Assembly: GCA_964187785.1 (NCBI GenBank) | Contig: OZ076413.1 | Coordinates: 29,264,001 to 29,328,000, forward strand | Source of the DNA: Amphiscolops sp. MND2022 | Lineage: Eukaryota | Direction: 5' to 3' | Length of the DNA: 64,000 nt | Part shown: one piece after another, positions 1 to 47,400 of the stretch | Layout: the number at the start of each line of letters is the position of its first letter | Numbering within the stretch: position 1 is the stretch's first letter | Program-made: the position numbers and the translations under genes | The notes under the pieces: generated by a model | Database searches by the model: none | Seen by the model: the letters and a program-made list of their open reading frames with translations, nothing else | Told to the model about the DNA's origin: nothing

Positions 1-2030
1 TTTTAATACAATAGTTCATAAAAATTGGTACAATTTGCGATCAGCAACAACTTTTACAATTATTAGTTGTTTTTGGAAAATCATCTATGGTAGAGGCGAA
101 TTTTTTCGACTCTGTGCCGAAAACATTAAAGGACGGTAGGTCATATGTAAACAGCTGATAATCAGCGACGCTAGTTCAGTGTCTCCCGTCTGACCAGACC
201 ATGTGCTTCTATGGATGGTCCATGCATGTTCCGCGTGAATTCAATTCATGGTTCATTTACATGGCCAGGCTGTTTTTCGCATGCAATCGCATGGTCCGTG
301 CAAGATCCATGCATGATCCATTCATGAAATCCAAAATCTGAAAAAAAACAAAAGTACCTCAGAAAAAGCTTTAAAGACCCTCGGAAGTACCAATGGAAGA
401 AAAACCACTCTCCTGAAAATGTATTTCATTCGTTTCGATTTCCGAATTTTTTGTCTCTGCTCGTTCAAAATTTATCCAATTTCAGCTGATCATGTTTTTT
501 TCACGTGATTCTTGCTAAAAGGGAAAACGAAAAATTGCAAATTGAAGTTGAATTATAACATTTAAAACCACTAGAACAATATCTAAATTTACTGTAGAAT
601 TCTCGTTGAATAAGATTTGAAATCGCAGTATTTTTGTAGAATAGGGCCTAAAGCCACTGGAATAGGATCTGAAATTACTCAAATTTGACATTTGACTCGA
701 ATTACTCGAATAAAATCACTTGAAAAAATAGAAACACACTAAAAAGTCATTAATCGCTCAAATATTAGAAAACCAAGCAAATAAAAAAATTGAGAGTTCA
801 AGTTTCCTTCTGTTCAGGTCATTTTCAGCCTCGGCTCGTCTCGTCTCGTCACGACAAGTTTTTTGTTCAACTTGAAAAATATTACCAGAGAAATACCGGC
901 GTTATATTTTATGACAAAATTTGACGACAAAACTTTTTGTGGATTTTAAATGAAGATTTTGAAAGGTTCGACTCAAATTCTGAACTTTATATAAACTTAT
1001 GCAATTACCGTCAATCAAAGACTGAAACTGACTTTACGACAACATTTTATGATTTACCAGAGTTCGAACATTGTTTTTGTTTATTGTTTGATCACGAAGT
1101 TTCAAGTTTTATCACAAATTTGACGGAATCGAACAATCAACTTATGAGTGCTTGTTCTAGAGACATCTCTATGAGCTTAAATTGGGTATACACTGTAAAA
1201 ATGCAAGCCAATATTTCCTTCTTAAAAGCTTCGAGTAAAAGTATCAGCATTCAAAATTGCATTCTAAGTGTAACTCAACTAGCATAGAAGCGGTCAATAT
1301 CCGCACCTGTCAGAATTGCTTGATTGATATGTGAATCGATTTGTGATCTCATTTCCACAATTCAAGAAAAAAGTAAAACTTCGTTTTCTGATTCGGAAAT
1401 TCTTATAGGAACATTATAATGATTCGCAGATGTTTTGAAGGTAAGGAACCTCTTTTTGCCTGTGTTGCCATTAAAATTGCCAGCTTTTCTTCAAATTCTT
1501 CAGCGTTTTTACAGTGTTTATTTTCGAACAACAGAACAGATAATGTTGGCTGAAGAGTTTTCGTATGCCAGATCTGGACCTTTCTCTACTTCTCAGAATG
1601 ACGACTGGATGATAGCTCCAGATCCTGCACATCGTAGAATGACGGCAATGACACTGAACTCTGATTATGAGGCTGACATACGACCACATTTGAGACGAAG
1701 GTATAAATCTGTAATAGAGTTAACAAATCAGATGAAAGATGAATACAAAGACTTAATTTCCACTTATTAGAACGTCACCGTAGAAATATTTAAAAATGAC
1801 ACGTTTCGAGTCATCAATCTTCCGTTACCAAATCAGCTATTCGAAGTCCTGTTGTTCTTCTATTATTTTCTAAAAGAATCAAAAATTTCCATTTTGGAAC
1901 AATTATATTTTTCTTCTTTTCCAACAGTTTCTGCTTGAAACAACTAGATTACCGGAAAGTGCAACCTACTTGGACAACTCGTTTATATTATATGTGCGAC
2001 TTGTGGCTTCGAATCCACTGGACCGTTTTT

Positions 2031-2569
2031 AGTCGGCGCCTTTTCCCTTAAGGAAAAAAGCCCGACTCTTACAGTGAGTAGTTTTTTTTTGTTTTTTTCA
2101 GTTGACAATCTCACTCTGAGTGGTCCACTTTTCTTACAATTTGTTCATCTTTCATATTTGTTCATCTTCCATCTTCGACCCAGCCGGAGTGCGTGGGTTC
2201 GATTCTCGCACTAAACCATAAATTTTTTAATGCTTCCAAAAGTACAGGTGAGACCAAAGGCCCCCCCCCCCCTTTGGGTTTTTTTTCGGCACTATGCGAC
2301 TTTTTTCGAAAATTTTTGAAATTTATCAAAGGGTACCCCCTTGCATTTTTTTTGAAATTTTCGGTTTGTAGAAAACGTTGAATGAGCCTGAATGGCCTTT
2401 TTTTGAGTTTTTCGGCATTTTGCGACTTAAAAAATACTTTTTTTTCGAAAAAAAATTTCAAAAATAATTTTTTTGAAAAAATTTTTTTTTCCAAATTTTT
2501 ACAATAGTTGTTCCTTGAATATTTTTGAGCCTAAGATATGGCGCCGACTTGGGACGTTCCCGTCTTGTT
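2031..2569. mobile_element. DINE-1/Helentron-like non-autonomous element (family H), copy 1
   Basis: Terminal hairpin AGTCGGCGCC...GCCCGACT (2031-2067), GGGTCCCCCC core repeats, and a subterminal inverted GCGCCGACT followed by GACGTTCCCGTCTTGTT. Confidence 0.6.
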
Positions 2570-3002
2570 CTTTTTTCGTCAGACTACAATCTCACTCTGA
2601 TTGGGCCACTTTTCTTACAATCGAAACTACTAAAACTACTAGCATAAGGCCGAGTCCGGTCAGCGGAAATTAGTGCAAAAGGGTCCCCCCTTTCATATTT
2701 TACTATTTTACCGTAGCCTACAAAACCGGACGAGAGTAAAGGGTCCCCCTTACAATTTTTTTTCGGCATTGTGCGACTTTTTCAAAATTTTTTTAATGTA
2801 TCAAAAGAGTCCCCCTTTCGAGTTTTTGATATTTTGCAACAAAATATATGTTGATGAAGCCCAAAGGGTCCCCCCTTTTACATTTTTCGGCACTATGCCA
2901 CTATTTCTGAAAGAAAAAATATTCAAAAATTTTTTTGAAAAAAATTTTTTTCGCTTCTTGAGCCTTAGATATAGCGCCGACTTTAGACGTTCCCGTCTTG
3001 TT
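2570..3002. mobile_element. Family H copy 2, head-to-tail with copy 1, lacking the hairpin
   Basis: Same core and GAGCCTTAGATATAGCGCCGACTTTAGACGTTCCCGTCTTGTT end. Confidence 0.6.
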
Positions 3003-3267
3003 TTGTTTACACAGTCTGACAGACCAAAGGTCCACAAGAACAAATGTCAAACGTGATAATTTCTTGGAATTTTTTTGCATTTTTGGAGTCATTCAGATGC
3101 TTTTATATTCACGTTTCTGTCCAGAAGAGTACTTTATACTCCAGAATAGAATACTTTATGACCTTACAAAATGAAATAAAAACATTGATTGTATAACTTA
3201 GTATTCCACAAAACCAGCCGCTGATCAAGTAATGTCGTTTCGCTCTCCACTTAAGGCCCTATCGGTA

Positions 3268-3698
3268 CCCAGTCAGTGTTCGAAGCCATGGAACGCTTGC
3301 CATTTCACGCAGTTTTGCTTATTTGTTTTCCATTTTTGAAACTCGAAGGAGGCCGCGTCCTAGTCGTGGATCTCGTCAAGTGCGATACTCTGTATCTCAC
3401 GAGCTGAGTTCCTCCCCTAAAATACAGCATTGTGACTTCTGGCATGCAATTTCTGTGAACTATGTGCACAGGTAGCTCCCATGTCCGACATTCTTTTACT
3501 ACATTTTTTCTCTTGACCTTTGTCAAGAAACTTGTAAATCTTGAAACCCTTACCAAGATCATGGTGAGCCTTTTCACGATCTTGCATGGTCATGGTATTC
3601 TTGCCAAGATCTTACTATGATCTTGGCAAGATTTTGGCAAGGCTAGAAAGGAGCTTGCCATGGATCTTGGCAAGGGTACCATGGCTTCGAACACTGGG
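3268..3698. mobile_element. CCCAG...CTGGG non-autonomous TIR element (CMC/EnSpm-like), TA TSD
   Basis: TIR CCCAG(TCAG)TGTTCGAAGCCATGG / CCATGGCTTCGAACACTGGG, TA on both sides, subterminal CAAGA/TCTTG repeats. Confidence 0.75.
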
Positions 3699-3872
3699 TA
3701 TGTGAACGTAGCTCATTACAATTTTATAATTCAACAGATTTCAACTTTGGAGTTTTCTTGAAATCTTATATGGATACTTTTCAGACTGTACAACTACGTA
3801 GCTCACACCTCTGAGGTATTTTCAAGTCACGTGGCGTGTGACCACCCCTCGAAGTGGGCGCAATCAGTGTGT

Positions 3873-6800
3873 ATGTCACAAAGTACCCACACCCGTAGCA
3901 AGAGTTCTGGGGATAACCTTTTCATGAAAATTATTTCCTTTCTTCTCATCGCACAGCCGGGATCGTTTTGTGGAAAGTTCATACCTGGTCTTGTCAAGTG
4001 GGGAACAATTTTGATAGGTAAGAATCTTCGGTTGACTTTACAGACTCGACAAGTATACCAAACCCATTTCAGTGAATGCAATCATGAACATCTTGTTGTG
4101 AAAACCCTTCTACCAAATGGAAAACTTCGAACTTTATCGAAATATCAAAAGTACCACAATTGCAGTTATAACTAAATCGTTAGAGCCCGACACAGTTGAT
4201 CTGTTAAAATTTTCAACTGGTATATAAAATCCTCATTCGTTGAATTGGAAACACCAATAACTCAGGCGCTATTACTTAAAAAAGTGTTGTTTTCCGTCAG
4301 TTGTCTCGGCTGAAAGTTCCGATGTTTGGTCACGTGACCGAATTTCAGCGCCTATAATTGAGATATTTCTGATCAAAAATGAACATTTTAAAAAGGGAAC
4401 GTTTTCGCTGAACTTAGTGACCGCAAACGCATTTTTACCAGCAATACTGTAACCTATAGTTTAGCTCTAACGATAGTTTCTCTGTGATGCAACCTTTTTC
4501 AACTAGTATAACAGTTTTTAAAAAAGATAAAGATAAAATTTGAAAGCGTTGATCTTTGTTCGCAAATCTTTGAAGCTAAATTTGCTCATGAATCTTATCA
4601 CACTTAACCTAAAAGCATCAATCTTGTTGAAACATTAAAGCCTATTTTATTTCCAGCGTTATCTTCTGCCACGCTGTACACGGTTGAGATGCTAGTGCTC
4701 CATGCGGAAGCGGAAGGCCAAAAGGGGACCTACTCGGTACTGGTTGGTCTCCGGATATGCATGACGTTGATCATCATCACCCCCAACATCATGTTCAGGA
4801 CGGAGTTGAAGAAACTCATGATCAACGAGTCATCCAGGGACTTGTTGCTGAGTGTGAGACCAGCCAAGTACGTCACCATTGCGTCATTGTTTCTCATGAT
4901 GCAACTTCTTCTGGCTGGAAGCTGTGGCACTCTGGTAAGACAACCATTTTCCATTCTTCTTAACCCCCAAATGTTATTATGCAATTTTCAAATTTTCAAT
5001 CTTTTTTTATAAATTTTCGAACATGGTTGTAAATTTACATTTAGTCGCTTATGTACAATAGAATTGCAGGAAGAATCTAGAGATGGCAAGATCTTCTGAT
5101 GGCATTCGTTATTTCTAACCATGGTTATAAAAACTCATGAGATTGGGTGGAAACCATTTTTTCTGAAAAAAATAAATACGCTTTTAAAGTTCGAAACATT
5201 TTTTTCTGCATTAGGAAACATCCTGGGTCATCAATGGAAAATATATTGTCTTTTAAAACATAAGAAAAGCAATCATCACTTCGAAAGCAAAGTTTAGAAA
5301 AACGGATAGAAACTGCAGAAACAGCAATTACAAAGATTTTCGAGACACCTTAGAGACCACTTTGGCAGCACAATTTGACGTTGAACTTCCTGGAAGATCG
5401 CGTGGAAGATTTGAATATCTTTTGGAATTCAAGAGAAAACTTCCTATACTAACAAGAATACAATTCTCTCCCGAAAAGCCTCAAAATGTTTCAATATTCC
5501 ACTTTTTTCATTGACTTAGCAACACGAAATGAAATCCGTAATCTGTTATGGGCCACTGGTTTACACAGCAGATAAGAGAAGCATTGAAAAATCTCAAAAA
5601 GATTCAGCGACACACAATGATAACATTTTTTCAGAAGAAAATATGACGCTGTTGAGAACATTTTTCACCAAAATTTTGTTCGTCTTGTAAAGGTTTTTGG
5701 TTGGACCTACCGAGAAACTCCCGTTGAAACCCCTAACAACTTCTTTGTATCAAACCAAGCGATAGAAGAAAGGATTCAAATGACAAGGTTTCAAAGAATT
5801 TGCAAGATCGTGCCAAGAAACTCAAGAAATCCCAAGATTCTTATCAAGAGTTTCAAGAGAAATCAAGAATAGGCAAGAAAATGCAAGACGATTCAAGATT
5901 CCCGTTTAGAACCCCAGTCATCATAAACCTGTAAAACCTTCAGAAGTCTCGGCAAATGAGCTGATAAATTATCCAAAAATATCCAGCATTATGGAATTAC
6001 GATCTAAAACTTACAAGTTTAAGACCCAAATCTGATCATGAAAGACATACGTATATCATGTTGCAGCTGACTATGAAGGAGCTCGACAAAAGCAACTCAA
6101 CAGAAATCGAGTTGGAGATGAACATGAGTCTGAGCACAGTGCATCTCATCAGCTCGGCCGTGACTAATATGTGGAATTACGTCATCGCCATCATATGTAT
6201 GATGATCTGCGGCCACTTTATCAAAGGTTTGCTGTCTGTCCGAACAATTCAACAACTCACAGTAGAAATTTTCAAAACTTCATTTTCCGCCCATATTTCA
6301 TATGGGAAAGGAAAATATTTAAATCAAAAGGTTTTTTACACAAAATTTGGCAAGCATCAAATTTATATTTAACTTTAAGGGTGTTACCCATAAAATTCAA
6401 CTCATATCAAGTTAGCTTCATTCGATTCGTATTTGTGGAGGATTCCAGACTTTTTTAGTTGACCCCAATGATCCAGAATGGCCCAAAAACAACCCGAAAA
6501 GGACCCCGAAACAAATTTTGCAAAACTTTCCATTTTTTTACGTTTTAATACATTTTTGTCAATGTTTCAATAGATGTCGTGTATTAGAATGATGGAAAGG
6601 TTCAACAAGACAAGTACTCGTTGTCCAGTAGTCGTTTATTAAGAGATAAATGCTTTTTTTGCAAAGAAAAAGACCCAAAATGACAAAAAAAACAAAAATT
6701 TCCCGAGTTTTCGTCACATTTCTGACAGACTTCGTGGATTGGATTATTTTAAAGGGTCAACACGGAAAAGGTTGGTTGTCGAGTAGTCGTTTTCGAAGAG

Positions 6801-9800
6801 TTTATTGCATTTTTTAAAATGAAAATGTCTTATATTGACTCCAAAAATGACAAAAATCTCAAATTTTTCTAATTCTCAAAAATTTTATGCATTTTTTTCC
6901 AAATTATCGACGGACTTTGTAGATTAGAACGTTGGAAAGGGTTAACAAGGAATGAATGTAATGCCCAGTAGGCTTTTGCAAAGAGTTTATTGCAGTTTCC
7001 TAAGTGACAATGTCTCAAATTGACACCGGAAATTACAGGAAACCTAAACTTTTCCAATTTTCAAAGATTAAATGAACTTTTTTTAAAATCTTCAACAGAC
7101 CTCGTGGATTGGAATGTTTTAAAGGGTCCACAAGGAAAAAGTTTGTGGAAAATTACCTTTTTTGAAGAGAACGTTGCAGCGTTTGGCTTCAAAAACACTT
7201 CAGAATGACTCCAAATGCGTCAAAAAATTCTTCGTACTTTTGCAACTTGTGTATTTTTTGAATCGTTTTGGTGGCAGAATGTCAGCAACGTTCAACAAAG
7301 ACTGAACCCACAATCTGGTAGGCTTTTAAAGGAATATTTGCAGACTTCAGTTGGAAAATGGCAGAAACTTGAGCGGAAAAATTCGAAAATTTGGAAATTT
7401 TTGCTTATTTCCGACATTTTCAATGAATTTTTATTTGAGATTGGAAAATTTCGGTAAAACAAAACCTTCGAATTACTCGAGATATTAAAATTAGGTCCGA
7501 AGCACCTTTTCCAAGTAATGCTTAATTTATGATCAAAAGTTTCCTCAGAATGACCCAAATATTGGAAAAACTGAGAATTTTCAAGTTATTTTCACATTTT
7601 TAGGCAGTTTTTAGTTCAAATTTTGAGCTACTTCCTTGCATAGAATGGTATCTCCTGTAGACAATTTTGAAGCGAGAACTGCATTTTTTGGAATTGGCCT
7701 CAAAAACACCCGAAAATCCAAGAAACAACAAAAAAACACGTTGTTTGACAAACTAATCCCAAAGTTTTGTTCAAACCACTAAGGTCCTTGAATAGACTAT
7801 CCAATGTTCTGAGCATATAAACAATAAAGTATTCAAAGCGCAACTGAGGGAAAAAGTGGGATGAAGTTCATCGCGTTTACAACAAAGTCGTCAAACTTTC
7901 TTTATTTTTGACAACATAGACTCAGTTTTAGACACTTTCCGAAAATTTACTTCAATCAGAAATATCATAGACTCAAGATTGAAACGTGTAGCTACCGGTA
8001 GTGTTTTGGAAAGACATCAGACAAGTTTATTTGCACAGCTTTCAAAAACTGAACTCGAAAACGTAAATTTCGAACTCATTTGTCGAATATTTAAAATTCA
8101 CAATTCTCCGAGGAAAATCATTAGATATATAGTACACCTTCCAAAGGAAATAGTTTCGAGATACTTCGTTATTTAGAATGGTGTAAACATTCAACAACAA
8201 CTAAACTCGGTGTCCAGTAGGCCTAATTTTGAAAAGAGATCTGGAGATTCATGTTAGAAAAGTTCCTCAAATTGACCCCAAAATTGTCAAAACTATTTCC
8301 CATTTTTGACACTTCTGTTGAAACTATGTGCAATAATATAACAAACCGGGATAGCTCAACTTTCTTAAATTTCAAACGACCTAGTTTCAAGTTTTAACAT
8401 TTTCTCAGTGCCAAAAATTACCTCAAGAAGTACGCTTGAGACTATGAAACAACTTTTTGCCCAACAGGAATTTTTTTATTTTTCCGGCAAAGTTCCTTCA
8501 TGGCGAAACGAATTTCAGCTCACACAACTATTTTTCTCAAGCCGAAAACAGCTATGAAAGCAAGCGGTATGCTATGAAAGCAAAGAGTTGAAAAAACTGA
8601 AAGAAGGTAATTTCTACAATCAATGAGAAACCTCGTCAGTTCCATAAGATCAAAAGTAACAAACACGTCACCCTCAAGACTCGGGAAACTTGTTTCTTTT
8701 ACAGAAAACCTCAAAAACTAAAAATTGCGGATAATGTTTTTCGAAAATTTTTTCCAAAAAATTCATTGAACATTTTCTCTTTTCTCAGTAAGTCGCATAG
8801 TGCCGAAAAAACGAAAAGTGGCCAGCTATCGCAGAATTAATTAAAAAGGGGTTTCCTTCAAAATGAGCTACGATGAATCAAAGCTTTCTCTTCTTCGAAC
8901 TTTTTGCATTTTTATAGTGCAATGGCTATTCTTGAGCCTCAAATTTATGTAAATGTAGAAGAGTTTGGGCGGAAAATATCTCGCTGCTCAGCGGGCGTTT
9001 TGTTTTCAAAAGTTCCGGAAAACATGTGGGTTCTACAACTTCAAAATTTTCCTTAATTTGTGAATTTGTATGAAGAATATCCAAAAAAGTGAGTTGGGTT
9101 TGATTTTTAGCCAAATTTGCGCTACTGTTCACATTTTTCAATCAGAATTATTTTTGGAGAGAAACGGTTATCAACAAGACAGGAACGTCTAAAGTCGGCG
9201 CTATATCTAAGGCTGAAAATGCGCAAAGTTTTTAAAATTGTAAAATCGGGGACCCTTTAGACTTTTTCAAATCCAGTTTGTTGCAACATATCAAAAAAGT
9301 TGAAGGAGGGAACCTTTGGTGACAAAAAAAATCGAAAAAAAAGTCGCACAGTTCCGAAAAAATTCAACGGGGGGACCCTGTAGTCCCGTCCGGTTTTGTA
9401 TTTTACGTTTAAAATTGAGTACACGAAAGGGGGGACTCTTTGCACTAACTTAGATGCGTTCCCGCTTGCCGGTCCAGTAGTTTAGTAGTTCTATAAAAAA
9501 TGTCCACTACGCATACATTCTGTGGTCTGACGAAAAAAAAAAGAAACAAACTTGCCACTGTAATAGTCGGGCTCATTTTGATAAAAGGCGCCGACTAAAA
9601 AATTATTCAAAGGCGCGAGAGAACTCTGACAAAGCAACTGACGTTTCAGGTATTACAGGTTCAAAACGTTTCACTGTAATATCAGAACTTACTCGACTAA
9701 AATATTTTCTATAGGATTTTAATGGACATCAATTTCGAATATAAGGGACATCAAGTCGGCGGTTTTTGTACTACTGCCCTATCAAGATAAACAAGCCGGG

Positions 9801-12507
9801 ACCAGCCCAAGTCGGCGCCATATCTAAGGCTCAAAATTAGCAAAAGGACTGCAAAATGTCAAAGTACTTGTGAATTGGAGACCCTTTTATGAAAAAAAAT
9901 GAAAAAAACTGAAAGGAGGGCCCTTTGGTCTCGTCCGGTATTGTATGTTACGCGGGAAACCTTTTTGGTTCAGTTCCTTGGGCCAACAGGTACAATTTGG
10001 CGTCTTCCTAAAATTTTGTAGAACTTTTGGGGTAGAACTATTTTGGTCACTTTACAAAAATTTACAAAAATAAAAAAACACACTGACGAAAAGCCATCAC
10101 TATAGTCGACTTTTTTCTCTAAAAAAGCGCCGAGTAAAAACTTTAATTAAAACAAAGAGTGAACATTATTTTTTAGAACTGGCTCGTTTCAAGAAGGACC
10201 TGAGCAGCGATCGGGTTTTGTGTGAAACCAAAGTAGCTCTATCTCCCTCTGGCGGAATTTTTGTGCGCAACGGCCACCCGAAGTTGAACAATGGCATTGT
10301 CCACTTCAATCACGGCAAGGCATTCTATTGAATTGCAGAAATTGAGATTCTGTACAGTTTCAGTAACGTGGATGTCGAAATAATGTTTAGGCGACAGGAG
10401 AATGCAACTGAAACCGGTTTTAGAGCCTTCGGACATACTCTCTCGTTATTTTGACCTTCAAGTACGTAATATTGGTGAACAAAGTTTTTTAAATCCTTAT
10501 TATATGAGCTCATTTACTTTGGGTTTCGCAACTCCAAAAACACGTCTGCAGCCAAAAACCCCAATTATATATAAATTTCATCTTTACCAGCGGTCTTCTT
10601 AAAGCCCATAAAGAGCAAACTCTTTTTTCTGAGCAATTCTCATAAATCTCACATTGCCCAAAAATGTCCCCATTAGACTTGAAAAACGTTTTTTTTGTCA
10701 TAAAACGAACAAAAATACCATAGAGGGGGAATTCTTTTGTGGAATGGGAAAAGGTCTGAATAATGCGCCAGGTATTTTGACAATGAAATTAACGTTATTA
10801 TCGGCTGCTTTACGTTGTCATTTCTATTTTAGAAAAAATGCACTATAAATTTGAAAAATTCAGTTAAAGAAATGATTCTTAAAACCTTTCCTCTTTTTTC
10901 CGGTTTCCATTTTTAATGGTGGACGATCTTGCAACCGCAGAAATGATTTTTTCTCATTCATTTTCAGATAAAGCTACATGCAGCGTCGAGGGCCTTCCAG
11001 AAGTGGTTCCTCATCAACATCACTGGAATTTTCCTCTCGGTCGTGGAAGTTTTCTTCTCCATTCTGGCTAGCCATGCCAGCTCTTCCGAGTTCACCGGCC
11101 TCGTCATTTTCGCAGGTCCGCTTCTCTGGGTTCCTGTGCTGCTAAAGCCAGTGATGGAAATCAATGTAGAAGCTGCCTCGCTCATTCAAGTATGTTCATT
11201 TCGAACACAAGCAAAATTAGTCTTTTTGTTATTGTTAGATATTTATCAATAATATTACAAAAATCGTTAATTTTGACGAAAAGAGTGCAAATTATTATGA
11301 TTTTCCCTACTCAACGTACGTTGCTATATGCGCGTTCAAATAGCTTGAATTATGGAGTTTCCTGAAGAGTTTCATTCACTCGAAAAGCAGTTGGAAAGAT
11401 TGGTGAAAAGATACAACAAAGATCTTTTTAAATTCATTTTTTCCACCGCATGAAAAGTTTCAATATCTCTACATTGTTGTGAACGCATTTTAGTTGTTAG
11501 ACATTTTCAACGCAGGATAAGTTCCAAACTGAAATGTGTCTGATAAAAAACCTGCCGAAAATGAGCTTTCAGTGATACAACTTTAGCATATGATTAGTAA
11601 TTTTACGGAGTTGTTTTTAGTGGATATATCCTCTAGAAGAACGGATTACAGTTTTCCAGAGATTCACACATCTACCTCTATCATTTCATGTAAGTTATCT
11701 GAACTTCACCCTTGTTGAATCTTGAATTGATTAAATTTCAGCTGCATTTGAAAATAGAAAAAATGCGTAATAAAGTTTGCAAAACTCTGTGGCTTCGACT
11801 TGCCGCTATCGAGTTTCAACTTTGGAATGCAAATTTTAACTTGATGAAATTTAACTGCATGAAACGGTGAGTTTTTAATACATAGAAGATTCCGTGAGAG
11901 TTTTATAAAATCATGATAAAAGTGCGAGGCAGCTTACAAAACCTTTGAAAAGTTCAAACGGGTCCAACCAGGTCATGCCATTGCAACCTTTTGTCTCTCA
12001 CTAGGCTAAATGCACTACACGGGCTTAAATGTTATTCTTAGTATTAATTCATGATTATAAACCAATAAAGCTGTTTTCGTCGTTAAATTGCACTGCGATG
12101 TTCAGGTTTTTTCGTTTGCTCTACGTTCAGACCACGACATGCATACAAAAAGCAAACCCTTCAAAATGTTCCCCTATAATTTATTCAAAAAATTCATTTT
12201 GAAATAAAGACGCCATTTTGTAACACTATAATTGCCGAAGTCAACCAATCATAATTTATCGTTTCCAGTGTTGATTCTTTCAACAGTGGGGCTACCTTTT
12301 TTCTGCATAGGTACCAAACTTACTGTTTCTGAACAAAAATCAAGATTCAGAACCCTTGTCTGTAAATATCACTTTCAGATTGGTTTATCTGATGTGTTAA
12401 TGTTTTAGGTTTATGGAGTTAATTTGTCCAGGAACTCAGTGGGAACATTTTTCATCATATTAGTTGTTGGCTTCATTGGAAGACTATGGAATTTACTTAA
12501 GCTTTAA
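3873..12507 (+). CDS. Gustatory-receptor-like / DUF3537-type 7TM ion-channel-superfamily protein, 393 aa, 8 coding exons
   Basis: Exons: 3873-4017, 4657-4934, 6067-6226, 10177-10314, 10391-10461, 10968-11189, 11621-11689, 12409-12507 (1182 nt = 393 aa + TAA). Intron phases are 1,0,1,1,0,0,0 and all match; splice sites are GT-AG except one GC-AG (10315-10390). The protein has seven hydrophobic segments plus an N-terminal S0-like helix, a long charged TM4-TM5 loop, and the C-terminus HLPLSFH|VYGVNLSRNSVGTFFIILVVGF. The start ATG is inferred; the frame is open back to 3786. Confidence 0.8.
6280..9170 (+). repeat. Large AT-rich interspersed repeat (family M) with ~190-bp internal subunits
   Basis: 6280-6510 aligns with 29290-29520 and 8900-9060 with 32930-33060; begins with hairpin CCCATAT-TTC-ATATGGG. 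Confidence 0.7.
9173..9596. mobile_element. Family H copy 3 (opposite orientation), in intron 3 of the 7TM gene
   Basis: AACAAGACAGGAACGTCTAAAGTCGGCGCT at 9173 and hairpin 9565-9596. Confidence 0.62.
9790..10135. mobile_element. Family H copy 4
   Basis: AACAAGCCGGG...AAGTCGGCGCC start and hairpin 10104-10135, about 40 nt upstream of the exon 4 acceptor. Confidence 0.55.
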
Positions 12508-12665: not shown

Positions 12666-12865
12666 NNNNNNNNNNNNNNNNNNNNNNNNNNNNNNNNNNN
12701 NNNNNNNNNNNNNNNNNNNNNNNNNNNNNNNNNNNNNNNNNNNNNNNNNNNNNNNNNNNNNNNNNNNNNNNNNNNNNNNNNNNNNNNNNNNNNNNNNNNN
12801 NNNNNNNNNNNNNNNNNNNNNNNNNNNNNNNNNNNNNNNNNNNNNNNNNNNNNNNNNNNNNNNNN
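12666..12865. other. Assembly gap (200 N)
   Basis: Run of exactly 200 Ns; adjacency of the flanking contigs comes from scaffolding. Confidence 0.99.
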
Positions 12866-12910: not shown

Positions 12911-15721
12911 TTAGAAACACAAATTGAATAGATCTTTGTTATCAACTATATATAACTTTGTCAAGGTCACGATATAGTTCTTGACAGTTATTGCCGGCAG
13001 ATCTTTCAGGTCCATAGGGATGAGTTTCAGTTCCATTAACCAGTTATGTGCTATGCGTAGCGAGTTTGTCAGAGGTTCACGCTTTAAAGTGGTTCTCCAG
13101 TAAATAGATGGCAGTAGTTGTTTTCTTCTGAACCTAGTTACGTGTATTCTTTCGGGCATACTTCCAAGATTCAAAAGCTGTGACGGTGATTCCAATCTTA
13201 TTTGCATAAACAGTTCTTTTATCAGTTCCACGAGAAACAGCTCAAAAACAGTGAGAACACCTTCTTTTGTAAAGATTTCAGTTAGTGAATCCGTCCTTTG
13301 CATGAAAAAGATTGCCCTCAGGATTCGTCGTTGTGCCTTTTCAATTTTTACTAAGTTCGTTTTCGCGGCAGAGCCATATACAAGTATTCCGTACATAATT
13401 ATTGATTTAGCAAACGAATTGTAAAACAAGAGTAAACAACTTTTTGGATAGAGATGACGAACACGATAGATTATTCCACAAAATATATTGAATTTTTTAA
13501 CAACATAGTTGATGTGATCTCTAAACTTCAAATTTTTGTCTATGTACACTCCTAGATACTTACATGCATTTTTGTACTCAACTTGTTGTCCGTCTATTTC
13601 AACTTTTTCTGGTTTTCCCAAGTCGAAACAGATGCTCTCGCATTTGTCTATGTTAACAGTCAATTTATTGGAACAGAACCAATTAAACATACAGTCAACA
13701 TCTTTCCTAATTAGATTATCAACTCGTTTTCCTGCTTTAATTACAGTTGTATCGTCAGCAAACATTGCTAACTGACTGTTTTCAACGCACTTATCGATGT
13801 CATTGATATAAATGAGAAAGAGAAGCGGACCTAAAACTGAACCCTGTGGAACCCCGGTACTTAACATTTTTACTTGGCTTTTCATCCCATTAATTATGGT
13901 ATATTGTCTTCTTCCATGGAAATAACTTTCAAGAATTTGCAATACTTTTCCTATGAAGCCATATTTTTCAATTTTATCTAGCAATATGCTATGATCAAGT
14001 GTATCAAACGCTTTTTTCAGGTCATTGAAACAAGCTTGGCCGGTTGACTTTTTATCAATTTCATCTCTCAAATACTCAGTGACTGAGATAATTGCGTTAA
14101 TACAGGACATTTTTTTTCTAAAACCAAACTGCTTTGACAGTATTTCATTTTCATTGCAAAAGACTACCATTCGTTTGAACAAAAGATGCTCATAAACTTT
14201 AGAAAGAGATCTTAGTAGGATAATTGGTCTATAGTTTTCAGGATTCGAATAATCACCTTTTTTGTATAAAGGTAATACTTTCGCCAATTTTAAAGACAAT
14301 GGGAATACACCTTGATTTATTGATTTATTAAAAATGTCAACTAAAAAAGGGTTGGAATATTAGCGAGCAACGTTTTAGAATTTCGTTGCTTATTCCATCG
14401 TGACCGGCACTTTTTTTGTTCTTAAGTTTTCTCAGAACCTTCGAAACTTTATCTTCGTTGGTATGTGATAGTACCATTGTTCTTTTAAATCGCTCAATTT
14501 TACATTTACGTTTTTGATTCGGTATTTCAGATGATAATGCCGGACCGATTAAAGGGAAATAATTGTTCAATGTTTCTGAACTCGGTGTCTGTGGAATGCT
14601 ACGTTCTTGTCGCTTTTGTTGCTTCAATGTGTTGTAAATTATCTTTGGAGTTGGTTGGTGACCTAGTCTCTTCAGATTAGCATCACGTTTTGCTGCTCGT
14701 ATTTTTGTGTCACTTCATTCCGTTGTTTTCTATAGGCTGAACGATTAGTCTCATTGGGATCATCAATCCATTTTTGGAATAGTTTATCCCGTTTCGTAAT
14801 AGCTCTCTTTTTTTTGATTCCTGATCCATTCAGGAGGTCGCTTGTTTAGCGCAATGTTCTTTTCCGGAGCAAACTTTTCAACACACTCCATTATTGTTTT
14901 CGCTAACAATTCAACTTTGTGATTTATGTCGATTTCATCAGGTATTCGCTGTAGATTATTCAGCAGGAGGAATAAGAAGTTCGGCGCCTTTTCACCTTTG
15001 ATTTTCCCTAAATTGCGGTATTTAGTTACTGCTGTTAAATTTTGAGGCAATACTGAGGATCCTCTGAGTAAAATATCTGCAGTAACTGTGTAATGATCAC
15101 TAATTGTGGTGGGTATAGTGTTCGTTTTTAAAAAGCGTGAAAATATCATACGATCAAGACAGCTCCTTGAATTAGGGGTAACTCTCGTCGGCAGTGTATT
15201 CTGAATTTCAAAATCATATGCAGCCAAAAGATTCTCATATTGTTTTTTTTCAGCGCTTTCTTTCAGTGTGTCAATGTTAAAGTCACCGAAGATCAATGTG
15301 TCGGCCCTCTGGCTTTTCAAAAAGGATAGGATGTTTTCGAATTCTTCAAAAAAATAATTTAGTTTGACACTGTCAGGTCTGTATATTAGACAAAACTTCA
15401 TTGTATTAAAGTCATAAACTGGACTTCGAACAGCGAGCACTCTAGCTTATTATCAATTTTCAGCGGTTTGTTTTTTATTGAGTTTTCGAAACAGAAAGCG
15501 ACTCCTCCTGATCGTCGCTTACATTCAGTTCTCGCAAAAGACCTAATGGGTTGATAGCCTTGCAAATCGTATTGATCCATATCTTCATTTTCACCTATCC
15601 ATGTTTCCGTTATTAGAAATAGTTTTGGTTTTTTCTGCAAAGTGTTAATCATGACATTTAGCTCATCAAGATGCAGCTTCAAAGATCTTATATTCATTCC
15701 TAAAACTACTTCATGTTTCAT
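12911..15721 (-). pseudogene. LINE ORF2 (endonuclease + reverse transcriptase), frameshifted
   Basis: Fragments 15398-15721, 14784-15440, 14337-14627 and the 462-aa RT at 12911-14299. Confidence 0.9.
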
Positions 15722-15870
15722 TGGGGCAATGATTTGGTTCTCAAAACAAAAAGAGTTTGTTGCGTTTTTCCGAGAAGATTTGCAGTCAAACTGTTTTTTT
15801 TTAGTTTTTTGGGATTGTCGTTGAACCGTTTTCTTATTTTGTTTTTTGTTAGTTCAAGTTTGACCGCAAA

Positions 15871-16701
15871 CTATACGCCCGAAGCGTTTGTTGTTGGAGA
15901 AACCTCTGTCAATCGCAAAGATTTTTCCTCAGCACCAAAATCGACAGGAGATTCTCTGACTCTTTTAGGATTGCTCGTTGATGACTGATGTGGTGTTTTT
16001 GGCGGATTATCATCGGCTGGATTCTTCTGCTTCCGTTTCATTTTGAGGATAGCACACTTTTGTATGTCATCAACTGCTTTAATGCTGTTTACTGTAACAG
16101 TTTTGAAAATTCCATCGTCATCTTTTTTGAACACTTTCACATCACAGTTGTATGTTGTAGTTATCAATCCAAGGCTGTCGGCGTGCGCTTGAATCTCTTT
16201 TTGCACCCGCGGTAGACGTTCTTTGATGTAAATACCTTTTCCATTTAGAGAGTTTGATTTTCCTGCCAACCAAGATTTTCGTCCCAAAATTTCTGCTTTT
16301 TCGTGGAAATACACAAATTTGACAATAATAGTTGGAGGAAATAGCTGTGACTGTGATTTCCCTAGATAGTGGCAAGCTTTGAAATTGCAGGGGTCTGTAT
16401 CGAAGTTCAGAAAATATTTCAAAAAGTCGCAAACCTGGTGTGAAAGAGGAAGCATTGGGTCCTTTACCGGCATGTTCTCCAAGATTAAGCAATTTTTTGA
16501 AGAATATTTTTCCCCTGCTGTAACTCTAAGTTCAAGATCAGATACATTATTCTGTAACGTTTTCATTTGATGATCTTTAGCAGTAATTTCTGAGCATAAA
16601 TGTTGAAGAATTTGTTTAAGTTTATCATTCTCAAGATTTTCTATTTCAGATAATACATTGAACGAATCCATATATGGTAACTCGAACAGTATAGCGTGCA
16701 A
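15871..16701 (-). CDS. LINE ORF1 protein (coiled coil plus RRM-like region), 276 aa, apparently intact
   Basis: Uninterrupted ATG-to-stop ORF with a heptad-rich N-terminus, IIVKFV and IYIKERLP motifs; directly upstream of the endonuclease. Confidence 0.8.
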   Translation of the reverse strand: MHAILFELPYMDSFNVLSEIENLENDKLKQILQHLCSEITAKDHQMKTLQNNVSDLELRVTAGEKYSSKNCLILENMPVKDPMLPLSHQVCDFLKYFLNFDTDPCNFKACHYLGKSQSQLFPPTIIVKFVYFHEKAEILGRKSWLAGKSNSLNGKGIYIKERLPRVQKEIQAHADSLGLITTTYNCDVKVFKKDDDGIFKTVTVNSIKAVDDIQKCAILKMKRKQKNPADDNPPKTPHQSSTSNPKRVRESPVDFGAEEKSLRLTEVSPTTNASGV

Positions 16702-41400: not shown

Positions 41401-44400
41401 TATCAAAATGAGATCTTAAGAACAAGTTTCATTTTGACACCAAAATTGAGTCAAAAGGCAACGGGATATTTTCCATCCTGAACTATTTTACCAACCAACT
41501 TTCGAAAAATTGTTCAAAAATTGCACAGAAGGTTTGAATATGCATCGAAGTAATGTGTTGAAAAATTGTGATATAGAAGATTTTCTATGAATAGTTAAAA
41601 TTTTTGTTTGCGAAAATCATAATTAAAAGTAGTCAATGATAGCAATTATTCCATAATTAATAATAGACGACTCCTAAAAGATTAGATAAAATGTTACATC
41701 TGGCGACAAAATTTCTGACGACGAAATTTCTGGTAATCACTCCGCTGCGTGTCTGAAAAATATTACGGAATCTATGAAATGACTTTCTAATGGCTAATAA
41801 CTGGAATCATAACAGAAATAGCTAAACTTGGATTCCAGACGTAGTAGTTGATGAAAAATTGCTGAGAGTTAAATTTCATAGCAAAATTTTGACATTGGGC
41901 GCGAATTTGATATTCAGAGAGTATACCTACCATCTGTGTTTCAGCTCTCTTGAAGTTATTCCACAGTTTCCTGGTGAGTGAGTTTTCGGATGAAAATCTG
42001 GATTTCTGGCTCGCAGTGGAATACTACAGAAACATCGGCAGCGTAAAGAGACGGAAGGAGACAGCCTTGAAAATCTACCAAACTTTCATATCAGAGGAGG
42101 CTGAAAAACAAGTCAACTTGGACTACGTTATCCGAAAAGAAATAAGCGATTGTCTAAATGACCCCTTCAGGTAAATTCGACTTCTGTTTCAGAAAATTCA
42201 ACAAATCTAAGATAGTCAATTGGCTCTGTGACATATGTAGACATGACCTCTAAACTTTCAACCGTTAATACGGATATCAGACAGAGAGACATTTGGTGCT
42301 ATTGACCAACAAAACTCTAAATGCTGTCTATTTATGTTACACATGTATGAAACCAATTAGTATACGATTTGATGCAGTGATCAGATGCTTTGATACAATA
42401 GTTAACTCTTAGAATAGAAAACACCGTTTTATCTAGTTTCCTGAGATTACAACATGGCGCAGTAACAAGATTTTATTCTTTTAACCGTGTGACATCGAAT
42501 TTTAACCATCCAAGAAAACATGGCCACCGCAAGAAGTAACATACAACTACCCTATCTTGAAGACACCGGACTCGACTGCAAAAAACTATATACACCGAAA
42601 GAATGGACGGAACGACTACGACATTATATCAAAAGAATCTATGATATAGATATAAAACCGGCATTATCCGGGGAAACAATACCCACAAGCAATAGATAGA
42701 CGGAAAAAGAACGAGAACGGAAAAGAAGACAAGATCTTATCTGGGGAGCCGGACCATCTGCCATCGAGAACATAACCAAAGGGGAATTTAATACAGACCC
42801 GGACACCATCGACACAGAAAGGCTGCTACAACTATTCAAAGACTATTACATGCCCAAACGGAACACATACCATAGCCGCGGAGATTTCTTCTGGGCAAAA
42901 CAAGAAGAAAATGAAACCCCGGAAAAAAACTGGAGAAAACTAGTCTCCCTCGAAAAAAAATTGCGAATTCAAGGACATCAAACAAGAAGACCTACTTATT
43001 TCGAAATTCATCACCAGTATTAACGACAAAAAACTACGGGAAAAACTTATCCGCGGAACAACACTGAACCTCAAAACAACAATGGATCTGGTAACCCAAG
43101 ACAGCTACGGAAAAAGGCACAAACAGTCCACGATACCCACAGCACTCGTAAAAGAAAAAGAAATAAAGCAGGAAACAATACAGAAAATACACAAAAAATA
43201 CCAACCAAACAAACACACAAATACCGGGAAACCAACACAAAAGAAAAACGATTGTGGATTTTGCGGACAACAAAATTGGACCCCACTACACAAATGCCCG
43301 TCAAAAACGGCAGAATGCAATAACTGCCATAAACTGGGACACTTTGTAAGAGTATGCTGCAGCAAAACCGAACACACGAGGAAAAGAGTAAACTACACCG
43401 AGGAAATCTACGGCAACGAAGAAGAAAGTGAACCCGAAGAAATCAGACAAATAACGCAAATCAACCGAATACAACCGAATAAAAACGACCACTACGAAAT
43501 CAATTTGAAAATTAACGGGAAATATCAGAACTTCACAATCGACACCGGATCGCCCGTAATTATAATGCCGAACAACCCAACACTCTATAAACAAAAAGAT
43601 ATCCAACCGCTACAAGAAAGATACCCAGACGTGAACAAAAATGAAATCAAATTCCTGGGTAAGATCTGGGCAAACATCGAATACAACGGCAAAACTACAA
43701 AATTACCAATACTCATCACACAAAGAAACGACATTACACCTTTTTTAGGTGTAAATTGGCTAAAACACCTACCGATCACCATTGACAAAATCTCATTGGA
43801 CGAGAAGACTAGCCAATCAGAAGACATACACACAAAATTAAACAAATTATTTGAAACGAACCGCACAATCAAAAACACGAAAGTAAAAATCCAAAAATAA
43901 CCCTGATGTTACCCAATCCAACAAAAAGCCAGACCAATACCATACCACCTACAACAAGACGTGAAGAACGAATTGGACCGATTAATAAAATCCGGACACC
44001 TTGAAAGATTGGAAACAATCGAAGAAGACTGTTTTGTATCCCCCGTAGTAATTACGGTAAAGAAAGACAAAACAGTAAAAATCACCCTATACGCTAGAAA
44101 ACTAAACGAAAGTTGCGTAAAGAAAAGACCCCACATGCCTAACATGGAAGAACTATTAAACCAAATATCCACCAAACTATCAAGAAACGACCACGACCCA
44201 ATTTGGATCTCCGTGATTGACCTTGATTATGCATACGGACAAATGAAACTAGCCCCGGAAACCAGTAAACATTGCAATTTCGCCGTGACAGGCGAAAACA
44301 TGAACGGATACTACCGATTCTTGAAAGGTTTCTACGGTCCAGCCTATATACCAACAATTTTCCAAGAGAAAAAAGAAAGAACACTCGCACACCAAACACC

Positions 44401-47400
44401 CGTTTGATTAAACGACATCATCATAGTAGCCCGGGGAACAAAAGAAGAACATACCGGAAAATTATATTCGGTTTTAACGAAACTAGAAAATGAAGGATAC
44501 AAAGCAAGCAAAAAGATATCAAAATTCTACCAAGAAGAAACGAAATGGCTCGGACTCACAATCTCACAAGACGGAATTAGACCTAACAAAGAAAAAACTG
44601 ACGCAACAAATAAATTGAAACACCCTACAAACACCAAAACACTGAAGTCCTTCGTCGGTGCCATCCAATATTTTGCAGAAATCATACCGAATCTCTCCGA
44701 AAAAACCGACAATATGAGACAACTACTTAAAAAAGAATCAAAATGGAACTGGACCGACGACCGCGATACGGACTTCAAGAAAATAAAACAAGAACGAACA
44801 TCTCTATCGTGCCTAGCCCACCATAACGGAAATAAAGAAAACATCGTCACCACCGACGCATGCATCACGCATGGCATTATGGCAAAAGCAAAGTAACGGA
44901 GAATTAAAACCTATCGCATTCGCCAGCAGCTACATGAATGATGCAGAAAAGAAATACTCCATCGGTCAATTGGAATTATTAGCCGTTGTTTGGGGCCTAG
45001 AGAGATTCCGATTCTACCTATACGGGAAACAAATCCAATTATTCTCAGATCACCAAGCACTGGAACCACTTTTGAAACGAAACAAAACTAACAAACAGTA
45101 TAGCGCCCGACTAACAAGATGGCTAGATAGACTAAACCACTTTGACATCAGCCTAAAACACACCGCCGGGAAAGAAATAAAATTCAGGGACTCCATTAGT
45201 CGTAATCCTACCGAAAAGCCGGAGCGGAAGAAAATTACGAAGAAGAATTTTTGATCAACGCCATCGCGCAACTAGCAACGGTAAACGCCCGTATAGGACG
45301 GATTTTCAACCAATCAGAAACCAAGAACGCGGTCAACAAAACGAACATGCATGGTACGCGCACGCTAATTTATACGCGACGCTGCAAAGCAAACAATAGC
45401 CACATTGATTCTCACTACCACTCACTACACCCGCTTGAAAACGAAAGTGATTTCAATTACCAAACACAACCGTCTAATTGCAAAATTACCGCAAATCATT
45501 CAAAAATGAACAATAACAACGACGAGAACCAAAACGCCAATTCCGAAATGACCGGCAAAAACGTTACCATTGGGGTGCAGATGACCATTGGCAATAATCA
45601 ACAACAGAGATAAATCACCCGAAACTATGGAACTGGTGAGAAGACGAACCGAACTGGCGAGACCCGGAGCAATGAGTCCACAATGGAATAAAGGCCTGGG
45701 CAGAGAAATATATGTGCCAAGAAGACCAGAAGAAGACGAAAGAAGGGAAATAAAAAGAATCGACATTCAGCTAAAAAGAAAGCAAGAACAGTCACAGATC
45801 GGCAGCGGATACTTTAGAAATATTGGCGATGAAACACTGCAAAGATCAGAAAACACGGAACAAGGAAGTAACAACATTGAGAACAGAGACACAGAATCAA
45901 CCACATCATCGAACACCGAAGAAGCCGTGACAACGCACGAACCCGGAGCTTATCCCGCAATACCCGTCCTGGAATACCGCGACGGCCCCATCGAGGACAT
46001 AGCTGTCCACTACGTCCGGATAAACCGGGTGGTCGAACAAAAAGCCGCCAGAAATAAACAACAGGAGGACAACACCAGAGCAGCCGAACTGGATTTCATG
46101 TTGGATCTGAAACCCTGATTAAAGAAACGGCCACAGAACCAGACCTGATAAAATTGAACTGCTGCCTCGAAAAAAACAACAGCCAACAAATCCCAAACAA
46201 CTACAAATCCGTAGCCAAAAAACTAACCAACAGATGGGGCATCGTCATGGCAGATGACCGCATCATCGTACCGAAAACGCTACAAAACGCCGCCCTAAAT
46301 GCTTTATACTTCGGACACCCCTGAATTAACAAGATGTGCAACAATGCAGCCATATTCTGGTGGCCGAACACGCGGGTCGACATCGAAAGGAAGGCAAAAA
46401 CCTGCTCAGCTTGCCTCAACGCCGGTAAGAATTTAAATTTTCATCCACCCTCCACCGAAAAAAAAACAAAAATCGAAACACCGAAAAAGCCGGGTGAAGA
46501 AATCCAAATCGATTTTACCGGTACCCTACATTACAAAAACCTACAATCTAGCCCATATATCCTAATTCCAGTAGACAAAACCAGCCGGTGGCCAGTAGCA
46601 AAAATATGTAAAAGTACAAGCCACCAAACCGTCATTACATTCTTAAATGAATATATAAATGTACACGGAGTACCGAAACGAAAAAAAAATCCGATAGGGG
46701 CGGTGCTTTCATCTCAAAAGAACACAAAGAATTTTGTAAATCGCAAAATGTATTTTGCGAATACGGCACCGCGAACCTGCATACCGGAACCGGATTGGTT
46801 GAACGGAACATCCAATCAATAAAGAAATTAATACTGGCGAACCTGGAAGACGAAATAAGATTACGCGAAAGCGTAAACAGAGCACTATTCGTGCTAAGCT
46901 TTAGGGTACACTCCGGAACAAAAAAACGCCGTTCGAAATTCTTTTCGGACGGGAACCCAGAACTAAATTATCTAACCTTAAAAATGCTGTTTCAGTAGAC
47001 TCAAAGGACCTTTCAGTCTACATCACCCGAAATGCGGCGGGAGAAAAACAGATCATCTGGTAATGTGGAAGAAAAAGACCGTGGATCCAAAATTCAGACG
47101 GGGAATGACGTTCCAACAAACCAAAAAACCGACTGGTTCGGTTAGTATGAACAAATTCAAATATCTTTTCAAATTCTACGAAAAGAATTATTAAAAAGGA
47201 TCGTTGGACAGTAAATTCAAAAACAAATGCAAACCGCAATATCAGGTTCGGACCACACCGTAACAACAAACAAAAATAAAATAATACATAGAAAGCTAAT
47301 ATCCAACCCGTTACCCTTTCAGCAGACGATCACCGCACCCACAAAACGAATTACCACCCGACAAAACGAACAACCATCTTGCTCAAAGACCCTGGATGCA

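Follow-up and report, generated by a model that had tools for sequence, protein, structure and literature searches.

A nine-exon gene that encodes a protein of 475 amino acids lies on the + strand at positions 1543-12507 of a 64,000-nucleotide stretch of DNA from Amphiscolops sp. MND2022 (contig OZ076413.1 of assembly GCA_964187785.1, positions 29,264,001 to 29,328,000), which is referred to here as the window. The gene model was rebuilt from the raw sequence by placing the proteins of two acoel orthologues on it with tblastn, and the resulting reading frame has no internal stop. The orthologues are a 503-amino acid protein of Symsagittifera roscoffensis and a 563-amino acid protein of Convolutriloba macropyga, both annotated as "uncharacterized", and the support for the splice junctions is entirely comparative. 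E-values between 1e-5 and 1e-20 were obtained in these tblastn searches for exons 2, 3, 4, 7 and 9. The comparison indicates that the locus is an intact, unannotated gene and that its product is a seven-pass membrane protein. The exons, their splice sites and the other features of the window are collected in Table 1.

Table 1. Exons of the gene and other features of the window (a slash marks the splice point; TM, transmembrane segment; nt, nucleotides; aa, amino acids; LTR, long terminal repeat; ORF, open reading frame)
Feature	Position	Strand	Content	Splice sites and phase	Match
Exon 1	1543..1700	+	proposed ATG at 1543; cytosolic N-terminus	donor AAG/GTATAA, phase 2	tblastn match to both orthologues at 1666-1731
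Exon 2	3785..4017	+	remaining N-terminal region and beginning of TM1	acceptor ttttcag/A, donor TAG/GTAAGA	tblastn match 3783-4019
Exon 3	4657..4934	+	rest of TM1, TM2, TM3	GT-AG sites	40% identity to Convolutriloba 563-aa protein, E 1.4e-12 (tblastn)
Exon 4	6067..6226	+	extracellular TM3-TM4 loop with NST and NMS sequons, then TM4	phase-0 intron 5', phase-1 intron 3'	tblastn E 2e-11 to Symsagittifera protein
Exon 5	10177..10314	+	first part of long cytosolic TM4-TM5 loop	GC donor ACG/GCAAGG	tblastn match 10176-10322
Intron between exons 5 and 6	10315..10390	+	76 nt	GC-AG, sole non-GT donor of the gene; acceptor tttag/GC	
Exon 6	10391..10461	+	second part of TM4-TM5 loop, end SDILSRYFDLQ	donor CAA/GTACGT, phase 0	tblastn match 10390-10467
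Exon 7	10968..11189	+	TM5, short outer loop, TM6	phase 0 both sides	51% identity to Convolutriloba protein, E 1.6e-20
Exon 8	11621..11689	+	69 nt, reads WIYPLEERITVFQRFTHLPLSFH	acceptor tttttag/TGG, donor CAT/GTAAGT, phase 0 both sides	70-78% identity to orthologues (tblastn)
Exon 9	12409..12507	+	VYGVNLSRNSV, then TM7(b); stop TAA 12505-12507	phase-0 intron directly 5'	44-47% identity to orthologues
Non-LTR (LINE-type) retrotransposon	12911-16701	-	endonuclease/exonuclease/phosphatase domain; third ORF of 276 aa without family		RVT_1 E 1e-31
Degraded LTR retrotransposon coding region	43082-48056	+	several ORFs; weak gag-aspartyl protease, integrase core fragments		RT RNase H E 6e-25
Dispersed repeat	2080-3010, 9170-9845		about 430-620 nt; two in tandem in intron 1, two in opposite orientation in intron 4		
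Tandem array	6553-7146		about 185-nt units, four copies 62-78% alike, within the 3950-nt intron 4		

Strong support for the junctions comes from the annotated Convolutriloba gene, in which each of the eight window introns (8/8) is matched by an intron of identical phase at the corresponding alignment column. The phases are 2, 1, 0, 1, 1, 0, 0 and 0 from 5' to 3', and the shared introns include the phase-2 intron that ends exon 1, the phase-1 intron after exon 2, those on either side of exon 4, the phase-0 intron after exon 6, both introns that flank exon 8, and the phase-0 intron that precedes exon 9. The Convolutriloba gene has three introns in addition to these. On comparative grounds, this agreement in position and phase strongly supports the corrected junctions, and it argues against a pseudogene. 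The end of exon 1 carries the conserved motif SDY-EADIRPHLRR(R), and the ATG at 1543 is the inferred start codon. Exon 8 is the best conserved segment of the protein, followed by the beginning of exon 9.

A preliminary description of this DNA had proposed an eight-exon gene of 393 amino acids, beginning with an ATG at 3873. That there is a spliced gene on the + strand was right, as were five of the exons; three exons were wrong and the gene starts upstream. The exons at 4657-4934, 6067-6226, 10968-11189 and 12409-12507 have clean AG/GT boundaries, in-frame joins and tblastn matches. The proposed first exon, 3873-4017, is real coding sequence that makes up the 3' part of exon 2, and the ATG at 3873 is internal, as the frame runs on to 3785 and then to the exon at 1543-1700, about 2.3 kb upstream. 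The fourth exon had been drawn as one piece; no single canonical 110-nucleotide exon is found between 10100 and 10480, and the region is instead divided into exons 5 and 6. Two exons near the 3' end have no match in the orthologues by tblastn: an in-frame join of 11742-11867 needs a TG donor (CGG/TG) and that of 12269/70-12310/11 needs a TA donor (AGG/TA), and the true GT donors at 11866 and 12310 put the last exon out of frame. The true exon of this region, the 69-nucleotide exon 8, had been overlooked. Since the junctions of the two 3' exons are non-canonical and there is no 110-nucleotide exon 4, the gene is real and the first model of it could not be spliced as described. The same exon set with canonical sites was rejected because it gives stops or a frameshift, and a rescue model with an acceptor at 12432 was dropped once the orthologues revealed exon 8. 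The statement that the last three introns are in phase 0 fails for the junctions first given and holds for the corrected ones, of which the first precedes TM5, the second follows TM6 and the third separates TM7a from TM7b. The misreading can be traced to 11742-11866 in intron 8. This stretch is open over 42 codons, is preceded by a good acceptor, is followed by a strong GTGAGT donor and has no orthologous match; its inclusion would shift the frame of TM7. Reading exons from the sequence by itself thus produced plausible but false ones, which the gene structure of the orthologues corrected.

The junction between exons 5 and 6 bears on whether the locus could be a pseudogene or a mis-assembled copy, with an open frame that is an artefact of a rare GC donor chosen to skip an in-frame stop. 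Exon 5 read straight on through the intron meets an in-frame TGA, the homology changes frame between 10177 and 10461, and the intron that bridges the change is just 76 nucleotides long. Just downstream, the gene is followed by an assembly gap and a LINE element, and no RNA evidence was found in the public data: four public runs cover the locus with contigs that span exons and introns at a flat depth of 6-9x and with no splice joints, and a search of the public listing for RNA-Seq runs found none. The flat depth and the lack of joints show that the four runs behave as genomic DNA from one sample, and they may be the assembly's own source. However, splicing 10314 to 10391 gives a gap-free alignment of exactly the orthologue length with both orthologues, and in Convolutriloba this very codon is likewise interrupted by a phase-1 intron. 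The remaining splice sites are all canonical, and there is no other stop or frameshift in the 475 codons. The contigs of the four runs match the assembly: they contain no indel in the region of exons 5 and 6 and agree with it over exons 5-9, apart from a few single-run variants. In the first intron of the Convolutriloba gene (10105/13303 of its locus), the sole junction that fits the annotated protein also uses a GC donor, CAG/GCATCA, and the GC donor of the window is less odd because GC-AG introns may be relatively common in these genomes. Taken with the shared introns, these observations make a pseudogene or assembly artefact very unlikely. Among the variants is an A to G change at 12434 in one of the four same-sample runs, which would turn the SRNSV of the last exon into SRSSV (N to S) and is probably an allele.

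Hydropathy analysis of the corrected protein gives seven hydrophobic segments at residues 127-145, 158-176, 203-221, 261-279, 361-379, 391-409 and 457-475, in agreement with the number reported in the preliminary description. Seven segments are also found in the Symsagittifera orthologue; in the Convolutriloba 563-amino acid protein, TM3 falls below the threshold. Lysine and arginine residues are concentrated on the side assigned to the cytosol, whose three loops have 23 of them, compared with 3 in the three outer loops. The two sequons described earlier in the TM3-TM4 loop, NST and NMS, are present, and both orthologues also have a sequon at this position. The TM4-TM5 loop is long, as had been noted, at 81 amino acids. 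The first intracellular loop (IL1) has 26 amino acids, the TM5-TM6 loop 11 and the TM6-TM7 loop (IL3) 47. There is no C-terminal tail, so the chain ends at the membrane. The N-terminal 126 amino acids are assigned to the cytosol and contain a motif, (S)D(H)Y-E-D-RP-LRRRLY, that is conserved in the three species. The sequence VYGVNLSRNSV that begins exon 9 is coding and conserved (VYGQKLNRTSV and VYNQRLNRTSV in the orthologues), and TM7b has a conserved G-x-x-G-R-(I/L)-W near its outer end. Hydropathy, charge and sequon together predict an N-in, C-out topology, as in insect ORs (odorant receptors) and GRs (gustatory receptors). A rhodopsin-like or other G-protein-coupled seven-transmembrane receptor (GPCR) has the seven hydrophobic segments as the sole point in its favor. 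It would conflict with the N-in orientation indicated by the charge distribution and the sequon, no GPCR family of Pfam was matched, and in the structural searches described below GPCR structures appear at TM-scores of 0.1-0.2 only. Neither the N-out topology nor the GPCR fold that had been named as grounds for rejecting a gustatory receptor-like protein was seen, and a GPCR can be considered highly improbable.

The distribution of the family was examined with an exhaustive phmmer search using a 92-amino acid exon query (4659-4934). Five proteins were returned, one of which was the window's own ORF fragment; the matches include the Symsagittifera protein (E 1.7e-10) and a 499-amino acid protein of Convolutriloba macropyga (LOC142340491, E 3.0e-7). 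A follow-up search with the Symsagittifera protein retrieved the Convolutriloba 563-amino acid protein and also placed the 499-amino acid protein in that species. The 475-amino acid product of the window is 38% identical to each orthologue, and the alignments are colinear with no gaps over the C-terminal ~300 amino acids. In the databases searched, these results describe a small family that, judged from its sequences, has so far been seen only in acoel worms. The databases contain one gene in Symsagittifera and one complete and one truncated copy in Convolutriloba, and a search for paralogues within the 64-kb window found none. The family looks single- or low-copy, and these numbers do not correspond to an expanded chemoreceptor repertoire. 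Two peculiarities of the orthologous sequences were observed. LOC142340491 is nearly identical to the 563-amino acid copy up to TM4 and then continues into unrelated low-complexity sequence, which indicates either that this duplicate is truncated or that the gene is mis-annotated. The Symsagittifera protein (isoform X2) lacks the 11 residues that open the TM5 exon (window 10968-11000; IKLHAASRAFQ in the window and MKLNACSLAFQ in Convolutriloba), and the cause is either use of an alternative acceptor or an error of annotation.

Several lines of evidence point to the superfamily of the insect odorant and gustatory receptors, the seven-transmembrane ion channels (7TMICs). For both orthologues, the 100 nearest neighbors by language-model features were listed from the ESM-Atlas, with each set of families taking a single row. 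All of the named clusters in these listings are 7tm_7, Trehalose_recp, DUF267 or DUF3537; their scores are 0.93-0.96, and they have 198-217 of 256 features in common with the query. Exon 7 of the window alone finds the same families at 0.81-0.86 together with one unrelated Tmp39 cluster at 0.80, a result that is best treated as a lead only. The fold was predicted with AlphaFold2 for residues 190-563 of the Convolutriloba 563-amino acid protein, using an 8-row family alignment (model 1). When this model was compared with the PDB in Foldseek, BmGr9 and Gr43a headed the list (TM-scores of at most 0.53), and of 48,161 chains the best 8 are without exception GRs or ORs with about 300 residues aligned in each, compared with at most 183 residues for unrelated helical proteins. 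Among the 30 best matches in the Swiss-Prot set of AFDB, 27 are GRs, ORs or Grl65a from flies or mosquitoes, and the clusters matched in AFDB are mite, tardigrade and insect GRs. In the DSSP assignment, model 1 has TM4 and TM5 helices of 47 residues and a last helix that is split, with the short helix before the last transmembrane segment (TM7a, helix 324-335) corresponding to exon 8. Long TM4 and TM5 helices and a split TM7 have been described for 7TMICs (PMC9998090). The last three introns of the gene are in phase 0, the final one 14 codons before TM7b, and a run of phase-0 introns at the 3' end with the last just before the TM7 exon is the described pattern of Gr genes (PMC9998090, PMC7746228). 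The locus is thus best read as an intact nine-exon gene for a seven-pass, N-in/C-out protein of a small acoel-only family that most likely has the 7TMIC fold, which would make it a probable new, cryptic member of a known ion-channel superfamily.

A number of results weigh against this assignment, beginning with the missing transcripts noted above. At the sequence level, hmmscan of the exon pieces and of three proteins, the Symsagittifera protein and LOC142340491 among them, matched no Pfam family, including 7tm_6, 7tm_7, Trehalose_recp and DUF3537, and a profile search of 5.8 billion proteins returned members of the family alone. Full-length and C-terminal profiles found no GR or OR among the PDB sequences; the two matches that did appear, MJ1247 and the ABCC transmembrane hairpin, were dismissed as chance at E ~1. 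The insect-type TM7 motif, (T/S)Yhhhhh(Q/K/E)(F/L/M), is absent, as the preliminary description had stated. The segment reads ...SVGTFFIILVVGFIGRLWNLLKL in the window and ...SVAA(L/F)I(S/T)VLL(I/V)GLVGRIWSLA.L in the orthologues, and the window segment has at best the T and an F-for-Y of the motif, neither of which is kept in the orthologues. This motif is the one primary-sequence hallmark of animal GRs and GR-like proteins (GRLs) and is regarded as diagnostic, not definitive (PMC7746228). On the structural side, the orthologue stands as a proxy for the window protein, the mean predicted local distance difference test (pLDDT) of model 1 is 48 with a predicted TM-score (pTM) of 0.32, and an ESM-Atlas shape search with it gave meaningless matches (TM 0.2-0.35). 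The second model, of Symsagittifera residues 130-503, has a pLDDT of 47.7 and a pTM of 0.26, is extended, and matches helical or coiled hairpins only, although Orco is its first Foldseek match with a TM-score of 0.19. The 11-residue gap of the Symsagittifera protein may have harmed this prediction. The second model appears uninformative, neither supporting nor contradicting the fold, which leaves one low-confidence orthologue model as the evidence for it. Three consecutive phase-0 introns are also weak evidence, as such a run would arise by chance about one time in ten by our estimate.

These results bear directly on a second explanation, in which the protein is a lineage-specific seven-pass protein whose likeness to GRs and ORs is one of helix count and topology, that is, of generic features of N-in seven-transmembrane proteins and not of common descent or shared mechanism. 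The complete lack of sequence similarity to the 7TMIC families, the absent TM7 motif, the low pLDDT of model 1 and the lack of a compact fold in the second model are all compatible with it. The matches to model 1 are, however, family-specific and extend over the full length, no GPCR or other seven-transmembrane family is found among the good structural matches, and the named language-model clusters of the two orthologues are exclusively 7TMIC families. It is these three observations that lead us to consider a purely lineage-specific protein unlikely and to prefer membership of the 7TMIC superfamily. The earlier identification of a divergent GR-like channel candidate is thus supported as far as fold, topology and language-model features are concerned, and finds no counterpart in a sequence-level match or in the motif. 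Its expectation that annotation would leave the protein uncharacterized was correct: the window gene is unannotated, no Pfam family is matched and the orthologues are annotated as uncharacterized only. The label "DUF3537 type" is not supported, as hmmscan gave no PF12056 match (E up to 1-10) and IL3, at 47 amino acids, is short.

Compared with the insect gustatory receptors (Drosophila Gr43a, Bombyx Gr9, Gr64a; 7tm_7/Trehalose_recp), the acoel family has in common the seven transmembrane segments, the N-in orientation, the long TM4-TM5 loop, the split last helix, a C-terminal part that is best conserved and a run of 3' phase-0 introns with one directly before the TM7 exon. In contrast, identity in the structural alignments is 6-10%, the acoel family has neither a profile match nor the TYhhhhhQF motif, and it carries a cytosolic N-terminal extension of 126 amino acids (window) to about 215 amino acids (orthologue) with a conserved basic motif. 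The insect receptors also form a large repertoire, whereas the acoel family is apparently low-copy. A parallel is found in the cryptic Drosophila Grl proteins and the other 7TMICs recognized by structure only; these taxon-restricted proteins, annotated as uncharacterized, do not have the TM7 motif and can be identified only from their predicted fold and topology (Benton & Himmel 2023, PMC9998090). GrlHz (GrlHolozoa) and PHTF are conserved, low-copy proteins that combine the 7TMIC fold with additional N-terminal regions and are suspected of having a non-chemosensory role (PMC9998090). PHTF differs in that its first intracellular loop exceeds 300 amino acids, compared with 26 here, and its distribution is broad and highly conserved among eukaryotes, compared with acoels only. 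GrlHz homologues can be detected by BLAST across Holozoa, and the acoel family, found in acoels only, is set apart from GrlHz by description. The plant DUF3537 proteins (PF12056) are language-model neighbors at 0.93-0.94 and have the same seven-transmembrane N-in layout, but their profile is not matched and their IL3 is long (PMC7746228). Non-insect animal GRLs such as Nematostella GRL1 are low-copy animal members of the superfamily. Unlike the acoel family, they have retained the TM7 motif at least in part, and sequence searches that start from insect GRs detect them (PMC7746228). The nearest Atlas neighbor of the acoel family, at most a possible relative, has the same fold as cnidarian "Gustatory receptor" clusters. 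The literature searched contains no report of GR-type genes in Xenacoelomorpha; the papers that pair gustatory receptor with Xenacoelomorpha concern other topics, judging by their titles, and acoels are unmentioned in the 7TMIC survey preprint.

By analogy with the solved ORs and GRs, four subunits of the protein would be expected to surround a central pore, with the last helix (TM7b) as its lining. Inside the cell, the subunits would be anchored to one another by the long cytosolic portions of TM4-TM6 together with the short TM7a helix, and we propose that exon 8 is the best conserved segment because TM7a would sit in this anchor. Channel function, tetramer assembly and ligand gating are inferred from that analogy. 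What such a channel would do is suggested by the low copy number and the conserved cytosolic N-terminal motif, which make a conserved, possibly non-chemosensory role, as for GrlHz or PHTF, at least as likely as that of a tuning chemoreceptor. It is conceivable, at a little under even chances, that the family represents an unrecognized 7TMIC branch restricted to Xenacoelomorpha, in which a low-copy channel with its own N-terminal motif and without the TM7 motif serves a conserved non-chemosensory role.

Several repeats lie within and around the gene (Table 1). The dispersed repeat of introns 1 and 4 has arms that are up to 91% complementary and yields spurious ORFs rich in G-P-P motifs, and the degraded LTR retrotransposon has a strong A-over-T skew. 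The assembly gap mentioned above, a run of N at 12667-12865, follows the stop codon.

The smell and taste receptors of insects belong to an ancient, patchily distributed superfamily, and sequence searches often fail to detect its members; acoels are a debated, early branch of the bilaterians. The gene described here was missed or left unnamed by annotation. If the assignment is true, a conserved, cryptic acoel member would provide a data point on the diversification of the superfamily in early bilaterians, and it would offer a low-copy, experimentally tractable representative with which the role of non-chemosensory 7TMICs could be addressed.

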